64,000 nt of DNA from assembly GCA_964035545.1 (NCBI GenBank), contig OZ037768.1, positions 2,140,741-2,204,740 of the forward strand, given 5' to 3'. The stretch comes from Bugula neritina. Its lineage: Eukaryota; Animalia; Bryozoa. The translations under genes were made by a program, and so were the position numbers. Of the stretch, positions 6,230 to 29,050 are shown one piece after another; the stretch's first letter is position 1, and each line of letters begins with the position of its first letter. The notes under the pieces were generated by a model, which was not told where the DNA came from, did not search any database, and saw only the letters and a list, made by a program, of their open reading frames with translations.

Positions 6230-9200
6230 TCAAGGTTGGGGAGCAGATAGGTATAGCATGTTCAGCCTGCAGTGGAGTGAAAATGTCACATAAACTGTGT
6301 CCATTCTGAAGGTGAAGGTTAAACAGATCCTCAGCAGATTTCCCTTCCACCCATCCATTGATTTGCCTGCAACACAACTAACACTCTTCATGCAAGGAGT
6401 TTACCAGAGTGTCAATTATTGCAGCAATCAGTTGCAGTTTTAAGAATTAGATTAATACGCAGTGATAATATTAGGGCAATGTTTGAGTTCTCTCCTTAGA
6501 CTTAGTGTTATAAAATTGTTGCTTCTTGCTCAACTTATTGATTTATATAATGGAACTCTTGATTTACCCATTGAATCCGGCCACATAGTAAATCTTGGGT
6601 TTGGGCATTCCACTGAAAGAAGAACTAAGAGCTGTACTGTATGCTCCCATATCCTTAAAAGTGATCCAATCACCATCAAACAGTTCTGGGAGAAGCACAT
6701 CATCTAAAATCTTATCCTCTGCATTGGCAACTGGACCCCAGATGGTTGAAAAATATAGCTTATCAACAGGCTGGTTGAATGCTAGAATAAAATCGCCAGA
6801 CAAGTTATAAAATGTATAATGAGATGTTAAATAATCGATCATTTTGAGAAAAGTTTACAATACTTACTAGCAACACTTGGTGGTTGATCTGATTTTTTAA
6901 GCAACAACTCAAAGAAGGAACCAAAGGCACCATCATTGATGTAATACTCCATCTTACAAGCTGAACCATCTTCTTGTTCAACAACTCGCTTAGCAATAAC
7001 ATGTACAGTGAGAGTATAGCCACTGGCGGCAAAGAATCTGCCAGGTTCAGATATAATCTCTACTCCACAGCCAACAGGGAAATGCTCATCAATAGCCCCA
7101 TTTAGTTCCACTGCAATCTGTAACAACCAGATGACAATCGACCTTCACAGTTTACATACTCTGATCATGAAGTCAATGCTTCAAATGTAACTGTCCACAC
7201 TCAATGGTATTTTCTACATGCTAAACTGACATGCACTAAATATTTCAACATGGTACCAAATAAAGACAGTACTGAATTCACAGCTGAAAATAACTGCCCC
7301 CACTGGGATTCGAACCCAAGACCTCCAGCCTGCAAGCCAGTGTGCTAACCATTACACCATGAGGACTACTGGGTAGTCACAACACTGCAACAGCTAGTTA
7401 AAAAGCTGCACGCAGATATGTCTGAATGTAGACTGTCGAGCAAATTTAGAGTTCCAAGATTAGTTGTACCTCTTCAATGGTGATCTGAGCTACTGAAGTT
7501 CCAGGAAAACCACCGCCAACATCCAGCAATTTCATGTCAAAACTGTAAGACAAGCCCACATCAAATGCTTTTCTTGCATCTCCCACTGCCTTGCGAAATG
7601 CAGTTGGATCATAGCAGCCGGTTCCCACATGGAAACTATTACAGTAGAAGAGCATCTCGCATGACTTAATGTTTACTTTAAAGATGAAACTAAGCAGCTG
7701 AAGAATTTATAAGTTCACAGTAAGGCTTTGTAAAATCAACTGCCTTAAAACTACCTGACTCCAACAACTTTTAGCTTGAGTTCCTGAGCTAGACGAAGGA
7801 GCTTGGGCACATCATCAGCTTTACACCCGAACTTGTCACCCATAGTCCACCGGACTTTTTCTGTAGGTTGTGGCAAAAGTCTTATAACCAAGCTATAAAC
7901 ACACTATAAATATGATAATTTGGAGAAATTTATTTCAAATAGAAATTGAATAAAATACAGCCCTATAAAAAAAAATTCATTCAAGTATATATAATTAATA
8001 ATGATGTAATGTGTAATGTTGAGACCATAAATAGAAATGTTGATAAGTTGTCACACTTACGTGCACTTGATTCATGAAGTCTGTCAATCACCAAACACTT
8101 CGGTTTTAATGAGTTTTATGCAGACACACTGTACACTATACATTGTACACTATACATTGTACACTATACATTGTACACTATACATTGTACACTATACATT
8201 GTACACTATACATTGTACACTATACATTGTACACTATACATTGTACACTATACATTGTACACTACACATTGTACACTGTACATTGTACATTGACTATAAT
8301 TATAGAGAATGTATAATGCTTCTGCATAAAGTTGCTTCATTCTGGCAACACCTCATCTCCAAAAGATTCTAACCTTGCAGTTGGAAAGCAGCGTTGTATT
8401 TTCCTCAACTCTGCCTCATTGTCAAAAGTCATCAAATCTACTCCAACTTCCTGGGAATAGCAGATGCTGCTGACCTGTTTGCAAGGATGTGCATAAATGA
8501 TTTGATCTGCAGTCACTCCTAGAGCCAACATTGTTTGTATCTCAGCCTACAATAGTTCCATTAGGAGTTGTGTTCTACCAATAGGAACTTTGTATTGGCA
8601 CTTTCAATAAGCACCAAACCAGGAGGCATAACTCCAATATTCATCAAAGCTGTTGAGGTTGTACTAAATAACACTGAGAGATGTTGTTATTTAAACCGAA
8701 TTTAATGTAACAACTTGGTACTTTTATTTACATTATTTAGTTTGAATATTTAATTTTATGCAACATTATTAGGGACTCCATTCACAGGGTTAAGGGTTAA
8801 GTGCAGAGTATGCAGTGTTAAACTATATCTAAGAAATTATCAAAATTTATGTAAGCATACCATATTACCCAAAACTTCGGTAGATTTGCAAAGCTTATGA
8901 ATTCTAGCACTGAAAGACAAATGGCAAACAGACTTTTCAACATTTCACTCTGGCCAAGTAGCTTGCAGCACTTTAAACAAGAGCTGATTTCATGCGTGGT
9001 TAGTTGTACTCATTATATGCCAGCTTTCCCATTAGCAAGTTTCAAGTTTCAAATGAATTTAATTGGTTGAATTTAATACAAAACTAAACAAATCATGTTG
9101 CTTTGAATGCTTTCCAACCAACAAGCAGGAATATGCATAATGAAATTGTTTTAAAATGTTTATTAATATTACTCTGTTTACCGTGACAACTGTAAAACCT

Positions 9201-10416
9201 TCACAATTTATTATGCTAGATATTAAACAACTTCAAGACTTAATTCATGCTATAATAATTCAAGAGTTCTAAGGCATGCTGACAATTTCTTTTTCCATAC
9301 ATCTGTATGCGGCAATGTCAGTATGATGAAGAAATCGGAAAAAGCCTGTGTTCATGTAGCAATGAAAATTAGGTTTTTGCAAGAATTTCAACTGCCCCAA
9401 ACCAAATTCTTTAAAAAATTAAAGAGCTTGAGCTGTTACCCAAATATACTATTGATTGATTCAAATTAGCTCCTGGCACCTACCTTACTAGCTACTGCAT
9501 GGTACCTACCTTATTGGCTGCTGGTACCTACTTTACTAGCTACTGCATGACACCTACCTTACTGGCTACTGGCACCTACCTTACTAGCTACTGGTACCTA
9601 CCTTACTGGCTACTGGTACCTACCTTACTGGCACAGTCAAACCCACAACCCAGCTGTACCAGGAGGTTCAACAGCACTGGATCAGGGTTACACTTGACAG
9701 CTGTAAAAAGATTTAAATTTTTAACAGATTTTATTCCACCAGCCAAACTGAGATTTAAAAATTTCAACAGTTGAATTAAAACAAATCTATGAGTTTCGCA
9801 CTAGAGTGTGCACCAACTGCAAAGTAAACTACTACAAACTGGGGACTAATTTCACATCTAACAGCCTAACATTACTATGTTCATGTCATGGTAAAGTTCT
9901 ACTAAGAGAATGAGACAATTATTACCATAAAAGGGTTTAATTCGAGGGAAGACCATTTTCCAAACTTTGTACTTTCTTGTCACATCACCAAGATCACATA
10001 TGAAGAAGGCATCGTCACTTTTCTAATGAATATACAGTAAAATCAGTAAAAGAAAGTTGACATGCCTTTGTTGAAGATTCAAAAGATAGACAATTTGTTC
10101 AACTCCCAAACACAGCCATCTGAATGTTATACTCAACTCTGGTCAAACACTGCAATGATAAGAAATATACAGATTAATTCTAACCCCTGGACTGTAAAGG
10201 ATTGCATACTGGATGCATTGGTATGTCATGGCTTCTATAATTCATGTTGTGAAATTGCTAAAAAAAGAGAAAAAAGAGAAGATAACTACTGCAACATTGA
10301 TTAGTTCATACTTCTACCTGCTGGACATGATCTCTAATCTTCTGGTCAATTACTTCAGGAATGGTCGAGCCTGGCTTCACAAAGTTAATGTCAGATTTCA
10401 ACAGTTGTGCAGCCAT
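6230..10416 (-). CDS. ODC-C: ornithine decarboxylase-like paralogue, divergent active site (WGPVANAED). Exons 10416-10318, 10022-9926, 9700-9624, 8546-8374, 7892-7755, 7635-7470, 7117-6868, 6781-6568, 6366-6230.
   Basis: GT-AG exons join into one open frame with [40 protein letters not shown] and MGAY. Exon structure is the same as in the two neighbouring paralogues. Confidence 0.9.
7295..7366 (-). pseudogene. tRNA-like sequence (tRNA pseudogene or tRNA-derived SINE head) in ODC-C intron
   Basis: GTCCTCATGGTGTAATGGTTAGCACACTGGCTTGCAGGCTGGAGGTCTTGGGTTCGAATCCCAGTGGGGGCA has A and B boxes and paired acceptor, D and T arms, but only a 6-nt anticodon loop. It is absent from the paralogous introns. 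Confidence 0.7.
8125..8292. repeat. 14-bp minisatellite (ACACTATACATTGT)n
   Basis: About 11 tandem copies; not present in the paralogous ODC-B intron. Confidence 0.95.
9478..9632 (-). repeat. 22/26-bp tandem repeat containing the exon end and 5' splice site (AGTAAG|GTAGGT)
   Basis: Plus-strand unit CCTACCTTACTGGCTACTGGTA, about 7 copies, starting at the exon boundary 9624. Confidence 0.9.
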
Positions 10417-11418
10417 CACCAGGTTTTAGTCTACACTCAGCTGGCTTTCAATAAAAAATGATTTTAACATCAATATTTTGTGTAATAAACAGGATGTTTA
10501 TATTTAGAACAATAATTGTTCTAAGCTAGCAGAAGTTTCTACAGCCGGCTGCATGGATTGAAGTGTACAGGTAGCAATACACCACTGATCTTATATGCAT
10601 CAGTAGTTATAGAATATAAAGTAATAGAAACATTACAACATGGCAAATTGGAAACAATGTTACATTTGGTACTGGGGGGCGGGGTTATCAAATACTTATT
10701 ACCTAATATAACACATAGACACAGTTATATTCTAAATATTTACATAATATATTCAATATAAATGTAACATTACGATGGTGTTGTACTAACCGGTGGTATT
10801 GTGTATAGAAGCTTCTTGTCTTCAGTCACGTCTGATTAGGACAAACTCTTGTGCAGAAAAAGTAAAGGACTTTGTTTCACAGCTGCCACAACAGTTCAAG
10901 GAGGGGCTCTCTCTTTTTCCCTTTGTAGCCAAAGCTCCGATACTCAACATAAAGATAAAATTCACGCAAGTAAAAAGTACCCTATAGCTAAAGAATGAAA
11001 TGCTATATCTTTAGGCTAGAATTCTCCTGGTACAAAAGTTCATAATAATCATGAACATATTATGTGAACGAATGAATGTTGTCCTTAGGCTAATTATTTA
11101 TCATCTGCTGCCGTTATATGTATGTCCTGTATATCGTTCAAGTGTCTATTTAATGTTGCTGATATAATATATAATACATTATGTATCCAAATAAAAAGAT
11201 TGTAAATATGAAAAGATAGAATACTTGTAAGTAATCAGCACAAAACACTGTTGAGCACTAACTCACATTGTAGGGTAGTTGAACGCTATGTATGTAGCAT
11301 ACTATATAGTAGCACAGCATACAAATTATCAGCTATAAAAAACTGCTTGAATACATCTATAGCATTATTGTGACAAGAAAACATTGTAAAATATCAAAAT
11401 AAATAAATAAAGTATTAC

Positions 11419-11494
11419 CTGAACCAATAGAACACTTTCAGCTCGAAAAGGAAGTATAAATTAACTCTGAAGATACAAAATAAGTTAATTTATA
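11419..11494 (-). promoter_or_regulatory. Putative TATA promoter and short non-coding first exon of ODC-C
   Basis: Minus strand: TATAAA (11494-11489), then TCTTCAGAGTT about 20-25 nt downstream, then donor CAG|GTAATA at 11419. The block is conserved upstream of ODC-B (18136-18211). Confidence 0.6.
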
Positions 11495-12138
11495 GACATT
11501 CAGCAATATATTTTACATATCAAGAACCTCAACATTGGTAATATTATAAATACTTGGCAATGTGATTATAATTTCTCCTTTTATTGCTCTGCTAATCAGA
11601 CACAAACTCTGCAATGGACTAATACAAGGTTGAAACCTCATGTCATGCACACGTACATCTTTTCCGGCACTGTTTCTGTCAATATATTATTTTGGTTTTA
11701 GTCTGGAAGCAAGATATGAAATGAATTTTAAAGACCAATCAGAGTGCAGCTTACTTATAACTCCCTCATAAATTATTGTTCAAAAATGAGCATTTCTAAG
11801 GTATGTGCCAAAAAGGGATTTTTGGTGATGTTACTATTTAACAATAGCAACCAAAGGAGTTATTTGTCCTCCTACCAGTTTAGTGGCACAACTCCAAATG
11901 AAAGAATTAAATTCTGAGCTCAATCATAACTAGCCTCATTGTACATACTGCAATCAAATAAAAATATGTGAAACAAGCCTCTGTGCCCTACACTACTAAA
12001 CATCCTTGTAGAATAAAAGCATGCTAAACACTGATTCTGCATAATCTAAGGCTTCATTTAGACCGCACCATCAAACAAGTGCAATCAAATTAGGTTACTA
12101 TTACACGGCTACTGCAACAACTGGCTACATCGACATTT

Positions 12139-12144
<6 letters not shown>

Positions 12145-12195
<51 letters not shown>
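12145..12195. repeat. (TA)n microsatellite
   Basis: About 25 TA units; a second short TA run at 12292-12310. Confidence 0.95.
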
Positions 12196-12197
<2 letters not shown>

Positions 12198-12507
12198 AGG
12201 GGGCTCTGTTTATAGGCCCTCTATGGTATCGAAATATACCAAATGCATATAAGCCCCCTATGAGCAGCCCCCTATGAAACCACATTTAAGAATATATATA
12301 TATATATATAGATATCTTTCCTGCAGTGGAGTCTAATGCAATGCCATTGTCTAGTCTGAAAAAGTGTATAGTGGACTCACTATTTAGCTTTCTCTTATTA
12401 TGTCAGCAAGTATAGTACTGCAGTGAATACAGAAACTTGGTAAAAAGAAAGCCCAAATTACATTGAAAAATTATTTGACAACATTTAATAAAAGACACTT
12501 TATACTG

Positions 12508-12849
12508 CAGGGCTGCCCAACAGGCAGCCACAGGGCCGAATGTGGTTCCCCCACCTATATATGTGTGGCCCTCAAAGGCATAAAACTCAAATTATGTTTC
12601 ACACATAAAACATGAATTAAAATGAAAAAAACCCCTTTAAATGTCTTATTTATACACATGCTATAAAACATGCAGCCTGCAGTAATTATTGGGACTTTAT
12701 TTTGCAATGATTCATAAGAGCTTGAAAGGAAATAGTTTAAACAATATTGATGCTGTGGCCCCTAGAGCGAGCTAAAGCTTTCAATCTGGCCCTTGCCATG
12801 AAATACTTCTTTTCAGTAGCCCTCGCTCTGAAAAGGTTGGACACCCCTG
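12508..12849. mobile_element. Non-autonomous hAT (Charlie-like) DNA transposon / MITE
   Basis: Terminal inverted repeats CAGGGCTGCCCAAC...GTTGGACACCCCTG and subterminal TGTGGCCC motifs. Flanks CTTTATAC(tg) and CTTTATAG resemble a degraded 8-bp target site duplication. Confidence 0.7.
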
Positions 12850-13235
12850 CTTTATAGACATGTGTGCGTGTTCTAAAATTAAGTAAGGGTAAGGTTTCCG
12901 TTTTATGCACATGGATCTGAAACACTTGCTTCAAGCACTTTTGTTTCTAGAAAGTACAACATTTGGACATTATGATTTATTGAGCTTTTTTTATTGATAT
13001 TCACTTCAAGTTATTTGATCTGTAAGCAAGCTTTCTGTGCATATAAATTTCTAATTGTAATAACATTTAGTTAGTTCATCATACTTTTTCAGAAATTTAA
13101 ACATGTTAAACAATTAGAAAACTAGTAGTAATGAGCATATTACAACCAATTGCTCATATCTTATAGATAAAAGAACATGTCCAAGATGAATAGTGACTCA
13201 TTAAAGGTTAAACATGTAAATAGTATTATATTGTA

Positions 13236-16200
13236 TCAAATTTGGGAGCAGATAGGTACAGCGTTTTCAGCCTGCAATGGAGTGAAAATGTCACATAAAC
13301 TGTGTCCATTTTGAAGGTGAAGGTTAAACTGGTCCTCAGTGAATTTCTCCTTGATCTGCCTGCAACACAACCAACACTCTTCATGCAAGGAGTTTACCAG
13401 AGTGTCAATTACTAGGATGTGATACTTAAAGCCTAATCATAGACTCACATCACAAGTAAATATTTGTAGTCCCATGAGCCGTAGTTGGAATCACTTTGAT
13501 GATTATGATATATGGTTCCATGTATCACCAACAATATTACCTGATGGACCGGCTACATTTCATACTTCAGCTTTTTGTTATAAGACTCTTATATGGTTAA
13601 TTAAAATGATTATAGCTACCTACTCATTGAGTCCGGCCACATAGTAAAACTTGGGTTTGGGCATTCCGTTGAAGGAAGAACTGATAGCTGTACTGTATGC
13701 CCCCATATCCTTAAAAATGATCCAATCACCATCAAACAGTTCTGGAAGAAGCACATCATCTAAAATCTTATCCACTCCATTACAAGCTGGACCCCAGATG
13801 GTTGAAGAATACAGCTTACCAAAACGCTGGTTGAATGCTAGAATAAAAATGCCACAAGTTATAAAATTCTCAATGAGATACAAAAAAATACTATGTTAAA
13901 TAATATAATACAATAAATAGTCGACCAACAAAACCTACTAGCAACACTTGGTGGTTGATCTGTAATTTTGAGCAGGAACTCATAGAATGAACCAAAGACA
14001 CCGTCATTGACGTAATACTCCATCTTACAAAGTGAACCATCTTCTTGTTCAACAACTCGCTTAGCAATAACATGTACAGTTAGAGTATAGGCACTGGCTA
14101 CGAAGAATCTGCCAGGTTCAGATATAATCTCTACTCCACAGCCAACAGGGAAATGCTCATCAATAGCCCCATTCAGTTCCACTGCAATCTGTAACAATCA
14201 GAAGAGAGTGTGTCTCTACATACTCTGATCATAAGTTGACGGCTATAATTTTTATTCTGAAAGCCATAACTGTATTCGTATTGAAATCGTTTAAGTTTTA
14301 TTAGTTTTTAAATTTAAAAATATCCAGCTCAAAGTCTGTGTATCTTATGAATGTGATTTAGCGAATATCTGGGCAAAGTGAGTTGTATAAATTTATCATG
14401 GGGTGTTAACGCTGACAGAAGAGCAGCCATATTTGTTTATATTATAACTCAGCAACAGGGTGCATGTGCAGCTGGCAAGAGTTGTAGAGGAATTGCCTTC
14501 CTTTAAGAAAAGACAACTTTGCACCAATTGTATAAAATTGCGTGGTTTTTCATTCGATGTATAGGAATGTAGTGTTGGATTCCTAAATAAATTGTACCTC
14601 TTCAATGGTGATCTGAGCTACTGAAGTTCCAGGAAAACCACCGCCAACATCCAGCAGTTTCATGTCAAAACCGTAAGACAAGCCAACATCAAACGCCTTT
14701 CTTGCATCTTCCACTGCCTTACGAAAGACCATCGGGTCATAGCAGCCACTTCCCACGTGGAAACTATTAATTACGGTAGAAGAGTATCTTGATAACTGAA
14801 TGTTTACTGTGTAAGGATGAAACCTAAGAGCTGAAGTTCACAGTAAGGCTTTGCAAAATCAGCTGCTTTAAAACTACCTGACTCCAACAACTTTTAGCTT
14901 GAGTTCTTTAGCTAGACTAAGGAGCTTGGGCACATCATCAGCTTTACACCCGAACTTGTCACCCACAGACCATTGAAGTTTTTCTGTAGGTGGTGGCAAA
15001 ATTCTGATCACCAAGCTATAAACACACAATAAACATGACAATTTGAAAAGTTATTTCAAATAAAAAATGAATTTAGAAGGCAGCACTATAATAAAGATTG
15101 TATTTAATCATTGGTGTAAATTGTATTGTGTCTAAGTAAAAGTGGATTGAAATTGAAGTGTTTTGGTGAATGACAGACTTCATAAAGTGTGACAACCCTT
15201 CAAAATTTGTATTTATAGTCTAGACTCTAGAGTTTAGACTATAGAGTCTAGACAAGTGGACCAGTGGGGAAAGTTGGATATCCTCTCTCAAATCACGCTG
15301 GCCATGTGCCGTGGGGGAGGGGAGATAACTTTAATCATGTTAACTAACCTTGCAGTTGGAAAGCAGCGTTGTATTTTCCTCAACTCTGCCTCATTGTCAA
15401 AAGTCATCAAATCTACTCCAACTTCCTCGGAATAGCAGATGCTGCTGACCTGTTTGCAAGGATGTGCATAAATGATTTGATCTGCAGTCACGCCTAGAGC
15501 CAACATTGTTTGTATCTCAGCCTACAATAGTTCCATCAGGAGTTGTGTTCCACCAGCAGGAACTTTGTATTGGCAATTTCAATAAGCACCAAACCAGGAG
15601 GCATAACTCCAATATTCATCAAAGCTGTTGAGGTTGTACTAAATAACGCCAAGAGATTGTTATTTAAACCGAATTCAATGTAACAACTTAGTCTTTTTAT
15701 TTAAATTACCTAGTTTGAATATAATTTTATTATTTTGTACTATTGGAGAATATTATATTCACAGGGTTAAAGTTTACCTATGGGGTATGCTGTAATGTTG
15801 GATATTTGCAATATATAAGCTTTGCAAGCCTTCCTACTTCAAACATTTCGATAAACTGTAAAACTTATAAATTCTAAAAATGAAAGATCTAATTAATTAA
15901 CAGACTTTTCAACATTTTACTCTGGCCAAGTAGCTTGCAGCACTTGAAACAAGAGTTAGTTAGTACTTAGTAGTATACTCATTATGAGCCAGCTCTCCCA
16001 TATGAGTGATAGCAAGTTTCAAATGAATTTAATTGGTTGAATTTAATACAAAACTGAACAAATCATGTTGCTTTGAATGCTTTCCAACCAACAAACAGGA
16101 ATATGCATAATTAAATTGTTTTAAAATGTTTATTAATATTACTCTGTTTACCGTGACAACTGTGAAACCATCACAATTTATTATGATAGATATTAAACAA

Positions 16201-17880
16201 ATTCAAGAGATAAGGCATACATGTGATAATTGTTCAGCAACTTAAATCTAAATTTTCCACATCTAAATGAGGTTAGGGCAGTAAATAATGGAGAAATAGA
16301 CACTATTTCAATCCCCACTACTCAAGTTATAATTAACAGTAGTGTCCCATTAGGTAGTGCATATTTTAGCCTTTTTATATAGAGAGTCTTACTGCAAATC
16401 TACAGTTTTACTGCTACATAACTATATGCTATATACTTGATCTTTCAGGAAATGAATATTGTTGATAGTAACACACACATATAAGTATTTCAAAAAGATA
16501 TTTAATAGTATTTCTCCAAAGTAAATTTTGAAAAGAAAATTGAACGTGAAAGCATTTTTGTGGTCATTTATTTAGTGAGAAGTGCTGCAGTGGCAGCTAA
16601 GAGATAAATGCCCTTAAGCATTCGATGTGCTGGCTGCCACCACTCTGGTTAATAAAAGCTTGACTAAGGTGTGCACTTGCCAAGGGAGCACAGCTTTCAA
16701 TTATAAATTGAGCATCAGGGAATTTGGATACTTAGAAAAGCCTGTGTCCATGGAGCAAAAGACATTAACTGCCCTACCAAAAGTTATTAAAAGTTAAAGA
16801 GCTTAGGCTAGTGAAATTTCTCTTCACTTAAGTGATTGATAGAAATTACTGTTGATACCTACCTTACTAGCACAGTCAAACCCACAACCCAGCTGTACCA
16901 GGAGGTTCAACAGCACTGGATCAGGGTTACACTTGACAGCTGTAAACAGATTCAAATTTTAAGGCAGATTTTATTGCAGTTGCCAAACTAAGATTTACAA
17001 ACACCTAGATGAAGGAAATATTAAACTTAGTAGGTATTAAAAAGCAATCTAATGGTTTGTAAATAAATGTTAGTGTAGACTGTTACAATTGTAAGCAGAT
17101 TTCATTCTGCCTGTCAAACTAAGATTTACAAAAAAATTCAACAATTGAATTAGTTTAGAAATTTGAGCTTTATGCTTGAGTGTGCACTGAAGTGTTTAGT
17201 AAACTACAGCAAACTGGGGACTAATTTTACATTCATCAGCATAACGTTACCATTTTCATGTCACTGTAAGGTTGTACTTTATAGGTAATGAGACAATTTA
17301 CCATAAAAGGGTTTAATTCTAGGGAAGATTCTTTTCCAAACCTTGTACTTTCTTGTCACATCACCAAGATCACATATGAAGAAGGCATCGTCACTTTTCT
17401 AATGTGAAATCAGAAAATAATGTTGGTATTTGCCTTCTTTGAAGATTCAAAACTTGAGAAAACTATTTTTTTTTAATTTCTAAACACAGCAATCTGAGTG
17501 TTGTACTCAGGCCTAGTTGAAAATTTGAGGTAAGTGCAGTATAATGAAGAAATTGAGAAAAGCCTGTGTTCTAGATCAGAAATATAGCAAAAGAAGTTAT
17601 GTTCTGAGGAAAATTCCAACCTGCGACTAAACCAAAATTTATTATAAAATTAGAGAACTTAGGACTTAGACTATCTCAATTTCTTCACTTCTGCTCTTAA
17701 ATGCAAATTTGCAGTTAATATGTAATACAGCCAAATTCTGAGGAAATGACTACTGCAACATTGAATAGTCCATACTTCTACCTGCTGGACATGATCTCTA
17801 ATCTTCTGGTCAATTACTTCAGGAATGGTCGAGCCTGGCTTCACAAAGTTAATGTCAGATTTCAACAGTTGTGCAGCCAT
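13236..17880 (-). CDS. ODC-B: ornithine decarboxylase-like paralogue, altered substrate pocket (WGPACNGVD). Exons 17880-17782, 17398-17302, 16939-16863, 15521-15349, 15015-14878, 14763-14598, 14188-13939, 13837-13624, 13359-13236.
   Basis: Open spliced frame with [41 protein letters not shown] and FNG. Confidence 0.9.
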
Positions 17881-18135: not shown

Positions 18136-18211
18136 CTGAACCAATAGAACACTTTCAGTTTGAAAAGTACATATAAACTAACTTTGAAGATACAAGTTTA
18201 GTTCATTTATA
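18136..18211 (-). promoter_or_regulatory. Putative TATA promoter and short non-coding first exon of ODC-B
   Basis: TATAAA at 18211-18206 and donor CAG|GTAATA at 18136; paralogous to 11419-11494. Confidence 0.6.
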
Positions 18212-19641
18212 GCAATTCAGCAATATATGTATGTCGATGGCTAATTGGCAAAAACTTATAATGTAAGTAGTACAAGGTTGAAACTCTATACCTTTGCATA
18301 CATATTTGGATTTTTATCATTATTTCTGTCAGTATATCATTGTTACATAGCCTTTACAAATCTCAACAGTTTTGAAGTGAATTTTGAAAGTCAATCAGAA
18401 TGCTGATTTCCAGTATTACTACGTAAAATAGCTACTTCAGAGATACATATTGCCTGAAGCTTATTTTTTTTCAATACACTAAAGTTTAAAAGGTTGGAAT
18501 AAAAGAGGTTTTTTGTGTTAAATATGACTTACTTAGTAGTCTTATGTTGAATTTCTGGCTTAATCAGTGTTGCACGCTTTGCTCTTCATCTCCAATAGCC
18601 GAATTTTTGCAGGGCAGTCCTGGTGACTAGCCAATCAAACCAAATCTACTCGTACTGCAAACCCTAATATATTTCAATCTGCACATCTACCAGTTCAATT
18701 GAACAGAAACACAACTCCAATCAAATGAATAAAAGTTTGAGCTCAAGAAAAATTAGCATATTACACAGTATCCTGCTAAATCGCTAGATGCAGTACCAAG
18801 TTTGAGTTCATTGAGTGTGGTACTTGTATAAACATCTATTCTATGTCCGAACCAAACTCTCTACCCCAGATCACCTCAAACCACTTTAGTCAGTGACTAC
18901 CAAGTTTGTGCTGCAGCTAACGATTTCCCAACTTCAGTGAACATGAATCTGCTTCCAATTCATAAAGTATAAGCATGCTAAGCGATGAACTGGAGAAAAT
19001 ATTTCTAGTTTAGTGATGATAAAACCCACTTTTGCATAGCCTAAGGCTATAACATTTAGACCTACTCCATCACATCATTGAGAGTAAATTGTGCATTAAC
19101 ATTTATATTGATGTTTGATATTATATATATTATCTTTCTGATAGTGCAGTCTAATGCAATGCCACTGTCTGGTCTGCAATGTTATTTAGCTTTACGATGG
19201 TTTTATTGAGGCTGGTGAAAATGTGATACATATATAAATATGCAATGGATTTTCAGGCACAACTGAGAACTTGAGCAGACAACCGCTATTATAACTTGAG
19301 GTGCATTTCCTGAACAAGATTGATCAGCATATTTTAGAATTTGCTTGCAGGCTGAATAAAAATTATTTGTCCCATGCCAAGTTAACCCTTCCTATTAGTT
19401 GCAGCGCTTCAACCTTTGAGCTAACTTGAGAATTCATGTTGAGGGGTTGTCAATCTCGATGATATTTCTATCACAAGATGTGTGAGCAGTGTAGATATCA
19501 TAGGTAGCTTTTAAGAAGCTTTTGCTTTGTGCACAGATATTCTCACAACTACAGTTTGAATAATTTAAATCAATTTATTAAATAATAGGAACAGGAATAA
19601 CCATAGTTGACTGGCCAGCAACTTCTATCAAAAAAAAAATA

Positions 19642-22600
19642 TTATCGCAAAGTTGGGGAACAGAGAGGCATAACATTTTCGGCATGCAGTGGAGTGAAGG
19701 CTTCACACACGCTGTGTCCACTTTGAAGGTGAAGATTGAACTGATCCTCAGCAGATTTTCCCACAGACCCATTGGACACCCTATAAATAACAATACAGCT
19801 GATGACATACAAGTATAACAAATCAGACACGTGTTGATAACTTTCGATTCTTATGTAAAGAATTTGGGCCCATATTTTGACATTGTGTTGATAACAAGAC
19901 AGCTTGTGCTACTGCAATGGACAAAGTTCATATTATTATGGCCCAAACCCCATGACTGATTGCCAATCAAGTGTAAAGTAAACAAAGAGTAGACAGTGAG
20001 AGTATGGGAGCTATTGCTACTTACCCAGTGAGGTTAAGCTCTGCCACGTAGTACAGCTTTGGTTTGGGCATACCATTGAAGCAGGAGCCGGCAGCGAGGG
20101 TGTACGCCCCCATGTCCTTGAAGACAATCCAGTCACCGTCATACAGCTCTGGCAGTACCACCTCCTCACAGATCTTATCTAGTCCGTCACAAGTGGGACC
20201 CCAGATGCTTGAGGAATACAGCTCATCAGAATGCTGGCTGAATGCTGAAGAAATAAACAAATAGGAGACAACTTCCAAAAGAGGCTGTGGTCAGGACGAC
20301 AAGCAGATGTCTGAAAGTAGAATAACTTACAGGGAATACTGGGTGCTTGCTCGGCGTGGTCATAGAGGAGGTTGTTAAAGGAGCCGTACACACCGTCGTT
20401 GACGTAATACATCATCATAGAGGAGTTACCTTCTCTCTCAACAACTCGCTTAGCAATAACATGTACAGTGAGAGTATAGGCACTGGCGGCAAAGAATCTG
20501 CCAGGTTCAGATATAATCTCTACTCCACAGCCAACAGGGAAATGCTCATCAATAGCCCCATTCAGTTCCACTGCAATCTGTAACAATCAGGTGACTGATT
20601 ATGTTGTGCCACCAACAAAAACTAGAACTTTTTACTCTGTAAATCATATTGTCACAAAACTGTTGGTAGCAGTGTGACGAGTTCGAAAAGTCTGGTAGTC
20701 AGAAGTGTATAGACAAGTAGCATACAGCTTGCTAATCCAGTTGTGAGTAAATAGAGTTGCGAATATAAGTAGACTTTATTTCTCGAGTAAGATATGCGCA
20801 GATGAACTTATAAAAATGAACTCCAAGAATGAACTTATAAAAAGGAACTGATTCGTAAACACAACTGCCTCAGTATTTATAGTAAACAAAACACTCTAGA
20901 ACATTCTCAAGCATTCCAGTATAGAAGATTCTAGTAGAAAACATTCTCCACATGCCAATACTATTTATAGAAAATCAAAACAAAACAAAACATTGGAATT
21001 TCCATGGTTATTTCGCAATTATTGCGCAATACCTTGTTTACATTGCTGGGCAGTAGTTAACATGACTAACCAAAACAGTAACAATGAACAATGACCCATC
21101 TCTTTGATTAGTCTAGAATATTTATGAACATTCCTGTATAATCATTAGGAAAAACCCGGTAAGTCTATTTATAGGTATATGTACACTCAGAATTTGTGAC
21201 AACCCCCCATTCTAAGAGAAATTATCTTGATAATTTCTCCTTACTACTTAAAATTCTGAGTCAATTCGGCTTAGATAATCGGCTCCAACATTGTCCTTTC
21301 CTCTTGTTGACTCCACCTTGATTATGAAGTTCTGTAAATACATAGCCCATCTCATCACTCTGCTGTTTATTACTGTACAGGTCCAACAAATTATCTTCGC
21401 ATTCTTCTCTTTCCTTATCGTGATCAATAATTCCAGCACCAGCAGCATCTAGAGTCATTACAGCTCCAACAGTCATAGAGTCGGTAGGCGTCTCCCGCTC
21501 AAAATATTTCTTCAGCATGTTGGCATGGTATGTTCTCCTCTTGCCTTTAATGTTGATGATGTAGTCATTTAGTCTGACTTTCTCCTCAATATTGAATGGT
21601 CCTTGCCAATGCATCAGCAATTTATTTCCATCCGTAGGTAAAAGAATGAGCACTTTGTCACCAGATTTGAAGTCTCTCTGCTTAGCTTTCTTGTCAAAAT
21701 AGTGTTTGTATCTTTTTTGACTGTCTTTTAGCGAAGCTAGTGCCATCTCCATCATGTCATCTAAACGCTCTCTCAATTCAAAAACATGTTGATAGCAGGT
21801 CTTGACTTCATCGGCAGTGTCTTCTTTTGTCCAAAGTTGTCGCAGGATGTACATTGGTCCACGCACAGTTCTTCCATAGAGTAACTCGAATGGGGCGAAG
21901 CCTGTTGATTCCTGTGGGACTTCTCTATATGCAAATAGAGCCGCATTGATGAACCGATGCCACTGTCTTGGCTCTTTAGCACACAACTTTTTTAACATAC
22001 TCTTGAGGGTTCCGTTGAACTTTTCCACAAGTCCATTGGCCATTGCATGGTATGGTGAGGTAGGAAGTTGTCGCATGTCAAGTAATCTGGTAAACTCTTT
22101 CATGTAATCCGAGATGAATTGAGTTCCTTGGTCGCTTATCACCTCCTCTGGTATCCCAACACGACTGTATATGTCAAGCAGCGCTTCAGCTACAGTAGCT
22201 GAGTCAATGTTCTTCAATGGTGTAGCTTCAGGGTATCTTGTAGCATAGTCAACTAAAGTTAGGATGTAGCGGTGTCCTTTCTCACTTGGAGGGTTAATTG
22301 GTCCGACTAGGTCTATTGCACATCTCTTGAATGGGGTGTCAATTAGTGGTGTTTCCTGTACTGGAACTTTCATGACTGAGCCTTTTTTCACCGTCTTCTG
22401 GCAAATGTCACATGATTGACAGAAACGTACGACATCTCCGTTTAGTCCTGGCCAGAAGAAGTTGGAAAGCACTCTATCAGTGGTTTTCTTTACTCCTAGG
22501 TGTCCGCTCATTATGCAGTCATGAGCTTTCTGTAGAACTTCCTTCCTCAGAGAACTGGGTACCATGAGTTGTTTAACAGGTTTTACACTGAAAGACTTCG

Positions 22601-25600
22601 ATTCGGTGTACTCACGGTACAGAATCTTGTTTCTCACCACAAACCTGGTGGTGCATCCCTTTTTCTCCTTCACTTCTTTTGCATCGAAGAAACGCTCCAA
22701 TGTGGGGTCATCTCTCTGCAGTCTGGCTATTTCATCTTTCCCTATACTTAATGGGTTAGCATTTGAATCAATCATCAGGGGTTTGTCTCCTGACTTCTCC
22801 TTGACAGCTTGAGCTCTTGTGGTTACGGCGCAGTCCTTCCAGTTTTCCAGCGGCTGGTCAGCTGATCTCGCTCCGTCCACATTCCCAATAAGCAGGTCAC
22901 AAATCGTCTTGTCCATTACTGCAGCTTTGACGACACCATTGTAAAATGGTGAGCGCACTGAGATAAGTGCCCACTGAGCATCCCTAACACTTGCATCAGC
23001 CATCTTCAAATAAACTGATTCTCCAGTTAAATGTTGAGGTTGCACGTACTTTGCATTGACTACAATGCAACCACAGCCGGTGTCGCGCATTACAGTAGCT
23101 GGTTGGCCATTAATTTCCGCATCAAATATTGCTGTGCCCCCATCTTTGAATTTAGGTCCATTCTTGCAAACAGCAGCGTTGATAAACTTTTTACCATTAA
23201 CTGTGATTTCCATAGGTTCTTCCACTTCAGATGAGATTCCTGGATCTTTGACCACAGTCTTATTCTGAGTGGTCGCTATTGCAGCAGCAGCATGCACTGA
23301 CCTTCCACCATACTTTCTGCAGTCAGAAGTATTGTGATTGTTCATCTTGCAATGTGAACAGTACTTCTTCCCTCGCCGTGGGCAGTTACGAGCAATGTGT
23401 GACTTATCTTTGCAGATGAAGCATGCACCATCGCTTTTACTTCCTTGTTCAGCATTCATGCTATCGGCAGGTGTGTTTTCCATCCTTTTTGTATTAGTTT
23501 TCTTTGTCTTTGCTAGTTTCCTTCCACGAGCGTGCAAGAACAGTGACGCTGCATCACACATATCCTCACTGCTGTTGTAGGAACTTTGCTTTAAATGCAC
23601 AGCAAGGTCGTCTGGGCATGATGATATAAATTGTTCAGTCGCCACTAGTTTGGCTATGTCCATGCCCCCTGAAAGCTCCACCCACTTGTGCACATAACTT
23701 TCTATCCTAGTGAACAGTTGGGCAGGAGTTTCATCCTCGTAAGCTTCTGCCTCTCTGAGCTTTTTTCTGTAGCCCTCTTGAGTCAAGTTAAAGCGCTCCA
23801 ACAAGGCTTCTTTGACTTTTTTATAATCTCTACGATCGGTAGGTGACAACCGGATGTAAGCTTCTGTTGCTGTACCCCTTAGGTACTGACTGAGATGGTA
23901 GGGCCAATCTCCCTTGTCCCAGTTACATCCTTCGGCAACCCACTCGAACCGCTCTAAATAGCTATCCATTTCGTCCACCTTCTCATCAAAGAATGGTATT
24001 TTTGGTTTTGGTTTGTTAGCTATTTCTAACCTGGTGCTCTCATGTCTTGAGTGCTCCAAACTTGTGTTTGCTTTCAGCTTTTCCATATCTAATTCATGTC
24101 GTTGTCTTCTCTCTTCTGCCTCCTGGTCAGCTTTAATCTTGAGTGCCATTGCCTCCTGATCAGCTTTAACCTTGAGTGCCATTGCCTCCTGATCAGCTTT
24201 AACCTTGAATGCCGTTGCCTCCTGATCAGCTTTTATCTTCATCTCCATTAAGGCTTTCTCATTCTCTTGCCTGATCTTTTCCGCTTCACGCTCTAATCTA
24301 CGCTCCTCTCGATCCTTTTCTTTTTCCTCTCGGTCCTTTTCTTTTTCCTCTTGTGCAGCAACAATGGGCAGGTTCTTTTCAACAAAAGCTACGAGCTTGT
24401 CCTCCACTAATCCAAGATCTTTACCCATTTGTGTCACTCTCTCCAACAACGCCATAATGTCTCAACAACTGTTAATTAATCCTGTGTATACTCACGTTGT
24501 AACTGATAACTTCCCTGTGTGCGACTGAGACTTCCCGGAGCAGCCCCCAATTGTCACAAAACTGTTGGTAGCAGTGTGACGAGTTCGAAAAGTCTGGTAG
24601 TCAGAAGTGTATAGACAAGTAGCATACAGCTTGCTAATCCAGTTGTGAGTAAATAGAGTTGCGAATATAAGTAGACTTTATTTCTCGAGTAAGATATGCG
24701 CAGATGAACTTATAAAAATGAACTCCAAGAATGAACTTATAAAAAGGAACTGATTCGTAAACACAACTGCCTCAGTATTTATAGTAAACAAAACACTCTA
24801 GAACATTCTCAAGCATTCCAGTATAGAAGATTCTAGTAGAAAACATTCTCCACATGCCAATACTATTTATAGAAAATCAAAACAAAACAAAACATTGGAA
24901 TTTCCATGGTTATTTCGCAATTATTGCGCAATACCTTGTTTACATTGCTGGGCAGTAGTTAACATGACTAACCAAAACAGTAACAATGAACAATGACCCA
25001 TCTCTTTGATTAGTCTAGAATATTTATGAACATTCCTGTATAATCATTAGGAAAAACCCGGTAAGTCTATTTATAGGTATATGTACACTCAGAATTTGTG
25101 ACACATATTTATACTCCGGGAACTGTAGAGTATATTTAGACTTCCAGGATTAGCTGTACCTCTTCAATGGTGATCTGAGCTACTGAAGTTCCAGGAAAAC
25201 CACCGCCAACATCCAGCAACTTCATGTCAAAACCGTAAGACAAGCCAACATCAAACGCCTTTCTTGCATCTTCTACTGCCTTTCGAAATGCGATGGGATC
25301 ATAGCAGTCACTTCCCACGTGGAAACTGTTTAGAAGAAAAGCATCTGTTGAGTGTGTGCTGGATATAGTTACAGTATGTTTAGAGCAGATTATAACGAGA
25401 TTATACAAGAGCATATGTACTCATGCCATCTACACTCTGGTAAGAACAAGAAAACTTTCAACATAATTTGATAAGAAGATATCAGAGAGTAGAGCAAGAG
25501 AACCTTTCTACAGCCTACCTCACGCCTACAACTTCCAATCCGAGCTCAACGGCAAGACGGAAGAGCTTGTGGCAATCCTCAACTTCGCAGCCAAACTTAT

Positions 25601-27469
25601 TACCCAGAACGCATCTGATCTTCTCTGTGGGAGGTGGTAGGATCCTCAGAACTAATCTGCAACCCGAACATTCTACTTGCATGGCCTTAATTATAACTCT
25701 AAGAGATTCACTGGACATAGCATCAGACTAACTCCTAAAGTTACTCGATCTTCTTGTCACACTATTCCGTCACAAGATTGCAGCAGACCAAACTTATCAC
25801 CACCTCAATCGGATATGCTGCAATATTTCTAGTTGCTGACCTTCTCAATTCTATAACAATTCTTAGAACATATGCTCAAGTGTAGAATAAACTAACCTTG
25901 CAGTTGGAAAGCAGCGTTGTATTTTCCTCAACTCTGCCTCATTGTCAAAAGTCATCAAATCCACTCCAACTTTCTGAGCATAGCGGATGTTGTTAGACTG
26001 TTTGCAAGGATTAGCATAAACAATTCTATCTGAGGAAACTCCAAGAGTCAGTACTGATTGGATCTCAGCCTATAAATCAACAGAATCACTAAACTCCAAG
26101 CTATACAATATGCTGGTGATACTACACAATATACTGGTGATACTATACAATAAGCTGGTGACACTATACGATACTCTGGTGATACTATACAATGAGCTGG
26201 TGACACTATACAATGAGCTGGTGATACTATACAATACTCTGGTGACACCATACAACATAATACGCACCAGGAGTTGTCTGCCTACCTTACTAGCACAGTC
26301 GAATCCTGTACCCAGCAATGCCAACAGATTCAGCAAAACAGGGTCACTGTTACACTTCACAGCTGTAAAATTAAGAAATATTTACTATTATAAAATGCCA
26401 TGAGGAGTTAAATAACGTTAAACCAGGATACATGTGGAGTTCCATTTGCTCACATGTTTACACTCACTAATCTTCCTAGCAGTGTTAGTGTATCTGATCA
26501 GCCATGATACTAAATCTAGGACACCCAGAGTTTGCAAGTGTGTTGTGAGAGAAACCCTACTTGTATATAATACAGCTTACATTAGTGTTTCACATTACTA
26601 AAAAAACAGGCGCATAAGGGGTTGAGATTTTGAGAAGCAATATACGTTGTAGCTCACCATAAAAAGGTTTAATTCGTGGAAAAACATTTTTCCAGATTCG
26701 GTATTTTCTGGCCACATCACCGAGGTCACACATGAAGAATGCATCCTCACTTTTCTGAAGATACAAGTCGAGTATATATATGCTATACATGTTTAGCACC
26801 AGCAATTACAATTGTGACAACGCACAGCTATACAGAATACAGCAGGTTCAATAGGTTCTAAGAGATCAGTTGGCTTCATTAAATCAATAAGCTTGCAGAT
26901 TATTTATCATGTATAATTTTAAGCTGAAGTGCTATGTAAATCTATACATTAATCAACACTGCCTTGATTGCTGCCTATATTCAGTGATGTTCAATACTTT
27001 ACAATATGTAAGCTTCAGATTTAATAGAAATGAACGAAACTTTAAACAATCTATTGAGGAATTTAAAGCCTATTAGAATACTCAAGTCCAGACTTCATAA
27101 GTAGTCTACATTTAATACTATAAGCTGTTACGGACAATGACTCGTGTAATACAACGTGCTATTATACAAAGCTATTGCTGGCTTAGCAAATCGGGATGCT
27201 AATTTGTTGACTCATGGTAATCCCGGGTGATTGCATAACAATTGCATAACGTAAGCCACATCATCATGCCTAGTAGCCACTAGCCAGATGGCCTAAATAA
27301 ACAAACAGCTTAGTATACAGCCCAGTACTCCATTATCAAGCAAATAGGGACTATGTCCACGGCCACTCACCTGGTGCACGTGCTCCTCTATCTTTCTATC
27401 TATTATTTCAGCCATGGTTAAGCCAGGCTTCACAAACGTTATGTCTCCATTCCACAACTGAGCAGTCAT
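19642..27469 (-). CDS. ODC1: ODC-A: canonical ornithine decarboxylase. Coding exons 27469-27371, 26754-26658, 26362-26286, 26069-25897, 25656-25519, 25325-25160, 20577-20331, 20244-20025, 19780-19642.
   Basis: PFYAVKCN (K69), [37 protein letters not shown] (Y323, D332), WGPTCDGLD (C360, D361), MGAYT and FNG are all present in one spliced frame. Confidence 0.93.
20650..21201 (-). repeat. 3' LTR
   Basis: Direct repeat of 24552-25103; AATAAA on the minus strand at 20780-20775. Confidence 0.97.
21261..24455 (-). CDS. Gag-protease-integrase polyprotein (1064 aa), no reverse transcriptase
   Basis: SCAN-like capsid region, two CCHC knuckles ([28 protein letters not shown]), protease RDTGC, integrase HHCC and D-D-E core ([22 protein letters not shown]), WQGPF. 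No YxDD motif. An RNase H C-terminal remnant (RWAMYLQNF...NVGADYLSR) lies in another frame at 21248-21370. Confidence 0.95.
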   Translation of the reverse strand: MALLERVTQMGKDLGLVEDKLVAFVEKNLPIVAAQEEKEKDREEKEKDREERRLEREAEKIRQENEKALMEMKIKADQEATAFKVKADQEAMALKVKADQEAMALKIKADQEAEERRQRHELDMEKLKANTSLEHSRHESTRLEIANKPKPKIPFFDEKVDEMDSYLERFEWVAEGCNWDKGDWPYHLSQYLRGTATEAYIRLSPTDRRDYKKVKEALLERFNLTQEGYRKKLREAEAYEDETPAQLFTRIESYVHKWVELSGGMDIAKLVATEQFISSCPDDLAVHLKQSSYNSSEDMCDAASLFLHARGRKLAKTKKTNTKRMENTPADSMNAEQGSKSDGACFICKDKSHIARNCPRRGKKYCSHCKMNNHNTSDCRKYGGRSVHAAAAIATTQNKTVVKDPGISSEVEEPMEITVNGKKFINAAVCKNGPKFKDGGTAIFDAEINGQPATVMRDTGCGCIVVNAKYVQPQHLTGESVYLKMADASVRDAQWALISVRSPFYNGVVKAAVMDKTICDLLIGNVDGARSADQPLENWKDCAVTTRAQAVKEKSGDKPLMIDSNANPLSIGKDEIARLQRDDPTLERFFDAKEVKEKKGCTTRFVVRNKILYREYTESKSFSVKPVKQLMVPSSLRKEVLQKAHDCIMSGHLGVKKTTDRVLSNFFWPGLNGDVVRFCQSCDICQKTVKKGSVMKVPVQETPLIDTPFKRCAIDLVGPINPPSEKGHRYILTLVDYATRYPEATPLKNIDSATVAEALLDIYSRVGIPEEVISDQGTQFISDYMKEFTRLLDMRQLPTSPYHAMANGLVEKFNGTLKSMLKKLCAKEPRQWHRFINAALFAYREVPQESTGFAPFELLYGRTVRGPMYILRQLWTKEDTADEVKTCYQHVFELRERLDDMMEMALASLKDSQKRYKHYFDKKAKQRDFKSGDKVLILLPTDGNKLLMHWQGPFNIEEKVRLNDYIINIKGKRRTYHANMLKKYFERETPTDSMTVGAVMTLDAAGAGIIDHDKEREECEDNLLDLYSNKQQSDEMGYVFTELHNQGGVNKRKGQCWSRLSKPN
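24552..25103 (-). repeat. 5' LTR
   Basis: Direct repeat of 20650-21201, followed on the minus strand by the PBS. Confidence 0.97.
26101..26256. repeat. 21-bp minisatellite in ODC-A intron
   Basis: About 7 copies of CTGGTGA(T/C)ACTATACAATNNN. Confidence 0.9.
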
Positions 27470-28189
27470 TTTTACTCTCTAATTTTCAATTTAATCAGCT
27501 AATTTTCAATAAACTAAAAATAAAAAACAGTGAAAAGATGAACATATTATTTGAACCCGAGTTTAACAGATGAATAACATGTGTTGTAGAGTGTTTCAGT
27601 TTTGTATTGTAAACTGCTACTGTGCCATCAATAGACAACCTGACGGAAATTTTGTGTTCAGAATGAATTATTAACTTTCCACAAGTTTAAGTGGTTTCAT
27701 CCCAGTTAGACACTATTTTTTATTTTGGTGTAATTACATATAGTAACATACCTATATAAATGTTGCATTGATTACTAAATAGTTATAGCTTATAATAGCT
27801 ACAATAGCTAATATAAATTATTTGGGATAATATTCATATTTTCATGAATATGTGTATGAAAAAAAGCAGTAATACATTAATAATAGATATGATCCTTAAT
27901 GGATACTTATCAACAAAATATCGTTTCAAATAACAAGTATAAAAAATGCAAAATTAATAAGTTAATGCAGATCAAAGGAATTTATTTATGTGCTAAATAA
28001 CAAGCAATTGATCCAATTTTATTTAAATATACATATATTTCAATAATATTTAAAAAATTGCACATAGAATATATATTGTACCAAAATAAATAAATAGCGG
28101 CTATCTAGGATGACACAGTTTAAGTTATGAGTTAGAAGTAGAATATGAAATGGTGGCTTGCACAAAAAGGCTGATACAGACTCAATTAG

Positions 28190-28261
28190 AAATAAGTGGT
28201 CACATAAAGAGAATAAGTGGTCACATAAAGAGAATAAGTGGTCACATAAAGAGAATAAGTA
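28190..28261. repeat. 21-bp tandem repeat (GAATAAGTGGTCACATAAAGA)x3.5
   Basis: Seen directly, in the intron just after leader exon 2 of ODC-A. Confidence 0.9.
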
Positions 28262-28312
28262 GCAGCTGTAGACTTACATGTTTAAATAGAATTCCTGTTC
28301 CTTAAGCAAATA

Positions 28313-28754
28313 TCAGCTAGGTTGCCACGGGGGTTCCTCATTCACATTCAACTTCTCACGGAACAAACAACTCTCCTCAACACTCAAATTTGCAAAGGCT
28401 TTCAAAAATACACCCTGAAATGATAGTTTATAATAATTTAAGCTGTAACTGTGAGGGGCCTCGAAGTGCGACACTGACTCTGAGCTTTTAGTTTCATAGT
28501 TATCAAATCTGACTATAACTGATTATCAATTTGATGGTTCTATTTTATTAGGAATTATTTATTTAAAAAGATGTTGAGATAGTCATAGTGATAGTTACAG
28601 TAGATCACAGTCACCAGAGTCATTGAAGACTTCAATGAAGTTGAAGAGATAATAAAATTAAATGTTCAACTAGTAAATCACTAAATGTTATACTGTAACA
28701 ATAACTTACCAATGATTTGAACCCCCTGGCACGGGTAGGTCTTAGAGAAAATAT
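28313..28754 (-). promoter_or_regulatory. Spliced non-AUG upstream ORF (uCC type) of ODC-A ending EEPPWQPS*; segments 28754-28710 and 28414-28313
   Basis: GCCACC-ATA start, TTG|GTAAGT donor at 28710, TTTCAG|GGT acceptor at 28414. Peptide: IFSLRPTRARGFKSL-GVFLKAFANLSVEESCLFREKLNVNEEPPWQPS* (48 codons). Matches the PPW(E/Q)PS* terminus of AZIN1/ODC uCCs. Confidence 0.88.
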
Positions 28755-28869
28755 GGTGGCGTAGTAAATTCCCTTTAGAAGGGAATCTGATGTTCTAAAG
28801 TGTGAAAGAGGTAAATAATTTTCTCGGCAGTCTTGACTGAAGACCGCTACCAGCTACACCCGCTGAAAA

Positions 28870-29050
28870 AAGAACTGTTGCGCGTGATTACGGCAAGTTG
28901 ATGAATCACGTTACAAAGCGTAATTAGCGGCCAATCAGATCGGCTGTAGCGTGGTCCGGCGTTACTGCGCGAATTTATCATTGAAGTAATATAACTCCTA
29001 GACAACGGAAACACAGCGTGATATTGTTGCGATTGTTACGTTGTGCCCTT
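28870..29050. promoter_or_regulatory. CpG-enriched promoter region of ODC-A (possibly shared with JMJD5)
   Basis: Local CG enrichment, GGCCAATCAG at 28929-28938, position directly upstream of the first leader exon. Confidence 0.5.

Follow-up and report, generated by a model that had tools for sequence, protein, structure and literature searches.

Two paralogues in a tandem ornithine decarboxylase cluster of Bugula neritina have altered ornithine-binding residues and no PPW-type upstream reading frame

Inactive homologues of ornithine decarboxylase (ODC) have arisen repeatedly (PMC2811004, PMC3543441). ODC1 itself combines two domains (PF02784 and PF00278) with an upstream open reading frame (uORF) of the uCC or PPW type, whose defining features are a non-AUG start codon in a favorable context, a pair of prolines close to the C-terminus and a terminal Pro-Ser (PMC2811004). 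Ornithine is bound by Y323, Y331, D332, C360 and D361 (PMC3543441), and specificity in this fold is set by a helix and a Cys loop (PMC7857480). Among described duplicates of ODC, D332 is replaced in AZIN1 and AZIN2 and in the homologues of Drosophila (D332Y) and Aedes (H197N/D332R), while mouse Gm853 (ODCrp), a leucine decarboxylase and thus active on a new neutral substrate, has a degraded antizyme element and an intact catalytic core and keeps the equivalents of Asp332 and Asp361 as well as Cys360 (PMC7671201, PMC5518511). Here we describe three ODC-family genes, termed ODC-A, ODC-B and ODC-C, in a 64,000-nucleotide stretch of Bugula neritina DNA (contig OZ037768.1, positions 2,140,741 to 2,204,740; hereafter, the window). 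ODC-A resembles ODC1 in its domains and its uORF, whereas ODC-B and ODC-C have neither an intact ornithine-binding set nor the uORF.

Spliced models built from the window place all three genes on the minus strand between positions 6225 and 27469, each with nine coding exons whose sizes match those of ODC in the bryozoan Watersipora subatra. All introns are GT-AG, there are no internal stops, and the indels among the 452, 446 and 452 codons (including the stop) of ODC-A, ODC-B and ODC-C are in-frame only, in agreement with an initial annotation of the window that had described three intact tandem genes of identical exon structure. At the amino acid level, ODC-A is 73% identical to ODC-B and 73% to ODC-C, and the latter two are 89% identical to each other. 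Databases were searched with single exons or with public full-length proteins; exon-wise matches in Pfam and PDB identified in all three an Orn_Arg_deC_N barrel and an Orn_DAP_Arg_deC sheet domain, the architecture of ODC-like group IV PLP decarboxylases with the alanine-racemase fold. Over 405 amino acids, ODC-A shares ~98% identity with KAF6037130.1 of B. neritina, and the predicted structure of the GenBank ODC-A orthologue has the ODC fold (template-modelling score 0.85-0.9 to human ODC).

To compare active sites, residue numbering was verified on human and mouse ODC chains in the PDB. All 20 critical residues of the tested set are present in ODC-A, and its ornithine-binding set is intact, whereas four of these five residues are changed in ODC-B and all five in ODC-C. 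The pocket changes in ODC-B comprise C164W, L166V, Y323F, N327Y, Glu at 328, Y331L, D332K, T359A, D361N and T390S; ODC-C has lost the catalytic Cys360, which is present in ODC-A and ODC-B and is Ala in ODC-C, and carries S200T, G362A and N398S. All motifs quoted in the initial annotation, including C164W in both paralogues, were found. The residues of the catalytic core that contact pyridoxal 5'-phosphate (PLP) or act in catalysis are kept at 17/17 positions in ODC-B and 16/17 in ODC-C, with Lys69, D88, E94, R154, H197, G235-237, E274, R277 and Y389 present in all three proteins.

Some of this conservation has another source, as two tracts of ODC-B and ODC-C have been homogenized with ODC-A by gene conversion. 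Synonymous differences between ODC-A and ODC-B amount to 9/91 in residues 203-298 and 1/23 in residues 124-149, compared with 89/202 elsewhere (long tract, p = 2e-9, Fisher's exact test), while those between ODC-A and Watersipora are uniform (39/64 within and 132/207 outside). Tract boundaries were picked from the data; a longest-run permutation test that is independent of them returned 0/5000. The long tract reaches to just short of the specificity helix and takes in the Gly loop, E274 and R277, so that retention of these elements does not count as independent support for function. The conserved core proposed for all three genes is present as described, but for these residues gene conversion explains it. 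Outside the tracts, ODC-B keeps K69, D88, E94, R154, K169, G171, H197, S200, D364, G387, Y389 and F397, and ODC-C has S200T among these, so that 0/12 core residues are changed in ODC-B and 1/12 in ODC-C (p = 0.002 and 0.001 against the substrate set, Fisher's exact test). At other conserved sites, 13/90 are changed in ODC-B and 17/90 in ODC-C (p = 0.003 and 0.0005 against the substrate set).

We found a spliced uORF of 48 codons upstream of ODC-A, with an AUA start and an EEPPWQPS* end, that conforms to the uCC definition. The GenBank Bugula assembly GCA_010799875.2 has an identical uORF; that of the bryozoan transcript L012 is 83% identical over its whole length, and three other bryozoan sequences altogether keep it. 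No PPW or uORF-like peptide was found upstream of ODC-B or ODC-C, which bears out the proposal that ODC-A alone has a uORF of this type. In blastn comparisons ODC-A shares its coding exons alone with ODC-B and ODC-C, suggesting that the duplicated unit was apparently without the uORF exons. The two paralogues instead have in common a 145-bp island, 83% identical between them and also found in the GenBank Bugula assembly, that contains TATAAAT and a splice donor. The separate TATA-type first exon that had been assigned to them is supported by this conserved island but stays a prediction, as no RNA joint to it was found among the listed contig joints.

The element that binds antizyme differs as well. 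Canonical ODCs carry K or R at 121 and K at 125 (K125 in 141 of ~160), and AZIN1 binds antizyme more tightly when it has K125 (PMC5518511). ODC-A has K125, while ODC-B and ODC-C have Cys121 (R121C) and Glu125 (K125E); R140 is kept in both, but inside a conversion tract. These changes bear on the possibility that ODC-B and ODC-C are catalytically dead regulators of ODC-A, serving as antizyme inhibitors or as heterodimer partners that tune or poison it. Such a role would fit the repeated origin of inactive ODC homologues, the presence of antizyme in the genome, the absence of Cys360 from ODC-C, the weakening of AZIN1 homodimers by loss of D332 and Y331, and the conversion through which a portion of the barrel still has the ODC-A sequence. 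However, K125E and R121C are opposite in direction to AZIN1 and speak against antizyme inhibition, even with an antizyme encoded in the genome. Additionally, the PLP contacts D88, R154, R277 and Y389, lost in AZIN1, are kept in ODC-B and ODC-C, most of them outside conversion tracts; the changes cluster on residues that contact the side chain and not on those that contact PLP; and AZIN1 retains the PPW uORF that both paralogues have lost. Among the regulators of ODC-A that the initial annotation had offered as one option, antizyme inhibitors are disfavored by the two charge changes, and we consider dead regulators unlikely. The antizyme gene lies at G000:C9:5245518-5248721 and has a TCC TGA frameshift-type site.

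To place the paralogues, a tree was built without the converted tracts. ODC-B and ODC-C together are sister to Bugula ODC-A (100/100), within the bryozoan clade (100/100), with a stem of 0.48 substitutions per site compared with 0.07 for ODC-A. Watersipora has a single ODC, with the uORF and a convergent KH-domain gene 8.6 kb further on, and no second ODC copy lies between the two; this KH-domain neighbor corresponds to the gene at positions 1-2773 of the Bugula window. The tree position, the single syntenic Watersipora gene and the stem lengths indicate that ODC-B and ODC-C are young, lineage-specific and asymmetrically fast. An ancient subfamily was rejected, since the paralogues nest in bryozoan ODC and do not group with AZIN1, nor with any characterized ancient subfamily in this tree, which includes AZIN1 but not Gm853. 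No other ODC genes were found in the 216-Mb assembly, where the sole other match was a DAP-decarboxylase-like gene in ciliate code on a small contig. That contig (G000:C233:7509-11231; 27% GC), in which TAA and TAG are read as Gln and which also encodes a small GTPase, is probably a ciliate contaminant of the assembly. The window differs from the GenBank Bugula assembly by a synonymous divergence (dS) of 0.18 and an intron identity of 79-85%, which suggests that the two represent different lineages of the B. neritina species complex. In the GenBank assembly, the first-exon island and intact exons 1-2 of ODC-B lie just downstream of ODC-A, where the contig stops. An assembly artifact was ruled out, as ODC-B starts at the same place in this independent assembly and a DNA run covers the whole of ODC-C.

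Spliced RNA contigs come from two studies. Contigs of two probable RNA runs on ODC-C have joints at six predicted introns, compared with none of these in a DNA-like run. As the RNA contigs differ from both ODC-B and ODC-C at several sites, they attest to transcription and splicing of B/C-type genes in other isolates without identifying the specific gene; the concern that the paralogues might be untranscribed is answered at this level. One transcript fragment has a C-like helix joined to the start of a B-like exon 8, and Glu328 is common to ODC-B, ODC-C and transcript fragment X1.

Selection was estimated with our own GY94 fit on 313 codons outside the conversion tracts. The ratio of nonsynonymous to synonymous rates (omega) is 0.55 on the B/C branches compared with 0.024 elsewhere, and omega = 1 is rejected (twice the log-likelihood difference, 2dlnL, 6.1); the omega of the stem is poorly determined because the outgroups are saturated at synonymous sites. 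Within the helix and Cys loop, omega rises from 0.003 in other ODCs to ~1.5 on the B/C branches, above the rest (2dlnL 15.7), while B/C codons outside the pocket are at 0.42-0.49, below 1 (2dlnL 8.1), unlike the value near 1 that would have counted against the initial reading. Conserved columns changed less often than variable ones (16/94 versus 44/91, p = 8e-6), and no stops are seen in ODC-B and ODC-C where ~14 would be expected under neutrality. These data indicate that the proteins are maintained and that the ornithine pocket was either released or reselected, two outcomes that they do not distinguish. Alternatively, ODC-B and ODC-C may be young duplicates under relaxed selection, with weak or no ODC activity, that are drifting to pseudogenes while conversion from ODC-A masks their decay. 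The omega of 0.55, the many sites at which RNA contigs of other isolates differ and the failure to find a B/C-type protein in other bryozoans are in line with this account. It is harder to reconcile with the missing stops and frameshifts, the slower change of conserved columns, the persistence of ODC-B exons 1-2 and the first-exon island in the Bugula lineage at a dS of 0.18, and the enrichment of changes at the five substrate residues, and we regard decay as quite unlikely.

Taken together, we favor a reading in which ODC-A is a housekeeping ODC, ODC-B is a PLP decarboxylase that acts on an amino acid other than ornithine outside polyamine control, and ODC-C is a slow or side-reaction variant; we give it a probability of roughly one-half. 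ODC-A would be under polyamine feedback via its non-AUG PPW uORF, which is observed to be conserved and would function by analogy with the uORF mechanism known from AZIN1 and ODC. The coding exons of ODC-A were duplicated in tandem once the lineage had separated from that of Watersipora, apparently without the uORF exons; the predicted TATA-type first exon was gained, and a second duplication yielded ODC-B and ODC-C. Judging from their residues, both are probably no longer putrescine makers and may carry out a different reaction. ODC-B retains the elements of the core, with the Schiff-base lysine, the PLP contacts, the K169-D364 dimer bridge, Cys360 and Phe397, around a rebuilt side-chain pocket that Trp164, Phe323, Tyr327 and Leu331 would fill and in which the amine-binding acids are replaced, and it would make a monoamine independently of polyamine levels. 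The initial annotation had allowed neutral or acidic substrates. Glu328 lies four residues before Lys332, one turn of the same helix, and could neutralize it, so that a neutral or hydrophobic side chain is more probable for the ODC-B substrate than an acidic one. Cys360 controls product formation in ODC, and C360 mutants are said (Jackson et al. 2000) to be slow and to drift into decarboxylation-dependent transamination. By comparison with these mutants, ODC-C would most likely be a slow enzyme or one that catalyzes such a transamination.

It is also conceivable that ODC-B is still a decarboxylase of basic amino acids (lysine, arginine or a modified diamino acid), with Glu328 and Asp168 taking over from Asp332 and Asp361. 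The presence of Glu328 in ODC-B, ODC-C and the X1 fragment would suit this, as would the shifts in specificity among basic substrates that follow from helix position and content (PMC7857480). Lys332, however, would repel a distal amine and could itself pair with Glu328, and D361N and Y323F remove two further amine contacts, which makes a basic substrate very improbable.

Several observations weigh against the reading we favor. Taken singly, the stem, ODC-B and ODC-C branches do not reject omega = 1, being too short, and the pocket omega of ~1.5 is not significantly above 1 (2dlnL 1.7), so that release of constraint explains the pocket equally well. Relative to other conserved sites, keeping 12/12 core residues does not reach significance. 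Y331 and D332 have a further role in dimerization (PMC5518511, PMC3543441), and the Drosophila and Aedes homologues with D332 substitutions have been described as non-functional. Furthermore, the ODC of Entamoeba is active on ornithine (Km 1.5 mM) even though it has Asn at position 361, which counts against a complete loss of ODC activity. The neofunctionalized module put forward initially is supported as to lineage-specific origin, transcription and loss of the ornithine pocket and uORF; the pocket omega falls short of showing positive selection.

Comparison with known systems places ODC-B and ODC-C as a variant of a recurring pattern seen in AZIN1/2, Gm853, insects, spiders and Trichoplax, although the genes themselves are apparently undescribed. 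They share replacement of D332 with AZIN1/2 and the insect homologues, and ODC-C also lacks Cys360, but they are unlike them in keeping the PLP contacts, in Glu125, and in the loss of D361 and the uORF. Gm853 is like them a paralogue with a degraded antizyme element, an intact core and a new neutral substrate (proposed here for ODC-B), but it retains both acids that they replace and would be of independent origin, as they nest inside bryozoan ODC. In FigC, SbnH and DAPDC, bacterial alanine-racemase-fold decarboxylases of non-polyamine substrates, specificity also depends on the 3-10 helix and Cys loop, where basic residues bind carboxylates (PMC7857480); these are distant and not among the top PDB matches, whereas ODC-B and ODC-C are 73% identical to a true ODC. 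Among 115 sampled family members, 17 lack both D332 and D361, including ODC-B, ODC-C and paralogues of Trichoplax, Priapulus, frog, fly and orb-weaver spiders. Those of Trichoplax (RDD39368.1), Priapulus (XP_014671140.1) and spiders also have an aromatic residue at 164; Trichoplax further shares Glu328 with both Bugula paralogues and the loss of Cys360 with ODC-C. We found no tested function for the spider, Trichoplax or Priapulus paralogues. The spider cluster (GFX05614.1; Trichonephila, Nephila, Caerostris), annotated as ODC, has YAHP, Phe164, Lys332, Cys361 and R277C. Like ODC-B and ODC-C, it has His112, Lys332, an aromatic residue at 164 and a neutral one at 361; R277 is gone, however, and a clade uniting the spider and Bugula paralogues was rejected (approximately unbiased test, p = 0.007). 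Searches of other bryozoans seeded with public full-length ODC and exon-7 copies gave canonical bryozoan ODCs and no B/C-type protein; a metagenome scan likewise gave none, blanks that do not prove absence in other Bugulidae. An exon-only homologue search yielded one fragment, and no paper on ODC paralogues of bryozoans or spiders, or on C360A, turned up in literature searches.

A bolder proposal is that ODC-B is an undescribed animal decarboxylase whose His112/aromatic 164/Lys332/neutral 361 signature is convergent with orb-weaver spiders and reflects the same non-ornithine substrate, that ODC-C is a decarboxylating transaminase or aldehyde synthase, and that the two supply an amine or alkaloid pathway particular to Bugula, possibly together with a duplicated deoxyhypusine synthase; we consider it decidedly improbable. 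A tandem deoxyhypusine synthase, a second polyamine-pathway duplication in the genome, lies at G000:C1:31393000-31431000, with two full exon sets and a partial third (~75% identical in compared exons).

Table 1. Positions of the ODC genes and associated features in the window.
Feature	Position	Strand	Details
ODC-A, canonical ODC	19642..27469	-	coding exons 27469-27371, 26754-26658, 26362-26286, 26069-25897, 25656-25519, 25325-25160, 20577-20331, 20244-20025, 19780-19642
ODC-B	13236..17880	-	coding exons 17880-17782, 17398-17302, 16939-16863, 15521-15349, 15015-14878, 14763-14598, 14188-13939, 13837-13624, 13359-13236
ODC-C	6225..10416	-	coding exons 10416-10318, 10022-9926, 9700-9624, 8546-8374, 7892-7755, 7635-7470, 7117-6868, 6781-6568, 6366-6225
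ODC-B specificity helix codons	13964..13996	-	Y323F, N327Y, E328, Y331L, D332K, H333I
ODC-B Cys360 loop	13770..13796	-	T359A, C360 kept, D361N
ODC-C specificity helix codons	6893..6925	-	Y323F, N327F, E328, Y331L, D332K, H333K
ODC-C Cys360 loop	6714..6740	-	T359V, C360A, D361N, G362A, L363E
ODC-A uORF, first exon part	28710..28754	-	AUA start, GCCACC context; GenBank Bugula 15/15 amino acids identical, Watersipora 14/15
ODC-A uORF, second exon part	28313..28414	-	ends EEPPWQPS*; Watersipora 73% identical
ODC-B predicted TATA box and non-coding first exon	18136..18211	-	
ODC-C predicted TATA box and non-coding first exon	11419..11494	-	
Conversion tract shared with ODC-A, in ODC-B	14045..14741	-	exon 6 and 5' half of exon 7, ODC-A residues 203-298; most of intron unconverted
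Same long tract in ODC-C	~6974-7613	-	
Second, shorter tract in ODC-B	15349..15425	-	3' part of exon 4, ODC-A residues 124-149; ODC-C 8374-8450
Long terminal repeat (LTR) retroelement without reverse transcriptase, 4.46 kb	20648..25103	-	ODC-A intron 6
3' exons of RGG- and Gly/Met-rich gene	1-2773		matches KH-domain gene adjoining Watersipora ODC

Intron 6 of ODC-A holds an LTR element with identical LTRs of ~554 bp and a CATAT target duplication, absent from this site in GCA_010799875.2. Its one intact open reading frame (1064 amino acids) encodes SCAN/gag, zinc knuckles, protease and integrase, and no reverse transcriptase domain. At least 37 near-full-length copies (94-99% identity) occur elsewhere in the genome, with a tandem array on C9, and the domain order suggests a Gmr1-like non-autonomous family. 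In ODC-C, the exon 3 donor region is tandemly repeated in intron 3 (9484-9624), giving several alternative donor-like sites, and intron 6 contains a short tRNA-like repeat of very high contig depth (7280-7390), probably a short interspersed nuclear element. Further along the window, exons at 31237-31824 and 51724-52119 match a KDM8-like N-terminal ARM and an arrestin N domain.

If ODC-B is active on a new substrate, ODC-A and ODC-B would form a very close natural pair (73% identical and partly homogenized) for mapping the specificity switch of ODC, and ODC-B would be only the second animal ODC paralogue found with a new reaction, after Gm853. The joint loss of the uORF and of the charges in the antizyme element would be a route by which a duplicate escapes polyamine feedback. 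The partial convergence between spiders and bryozoans is the most interesting lead, and the cluster bears on whether invertebrate ODC homologues that have been called inactive from sequence alone may be other enzymes.

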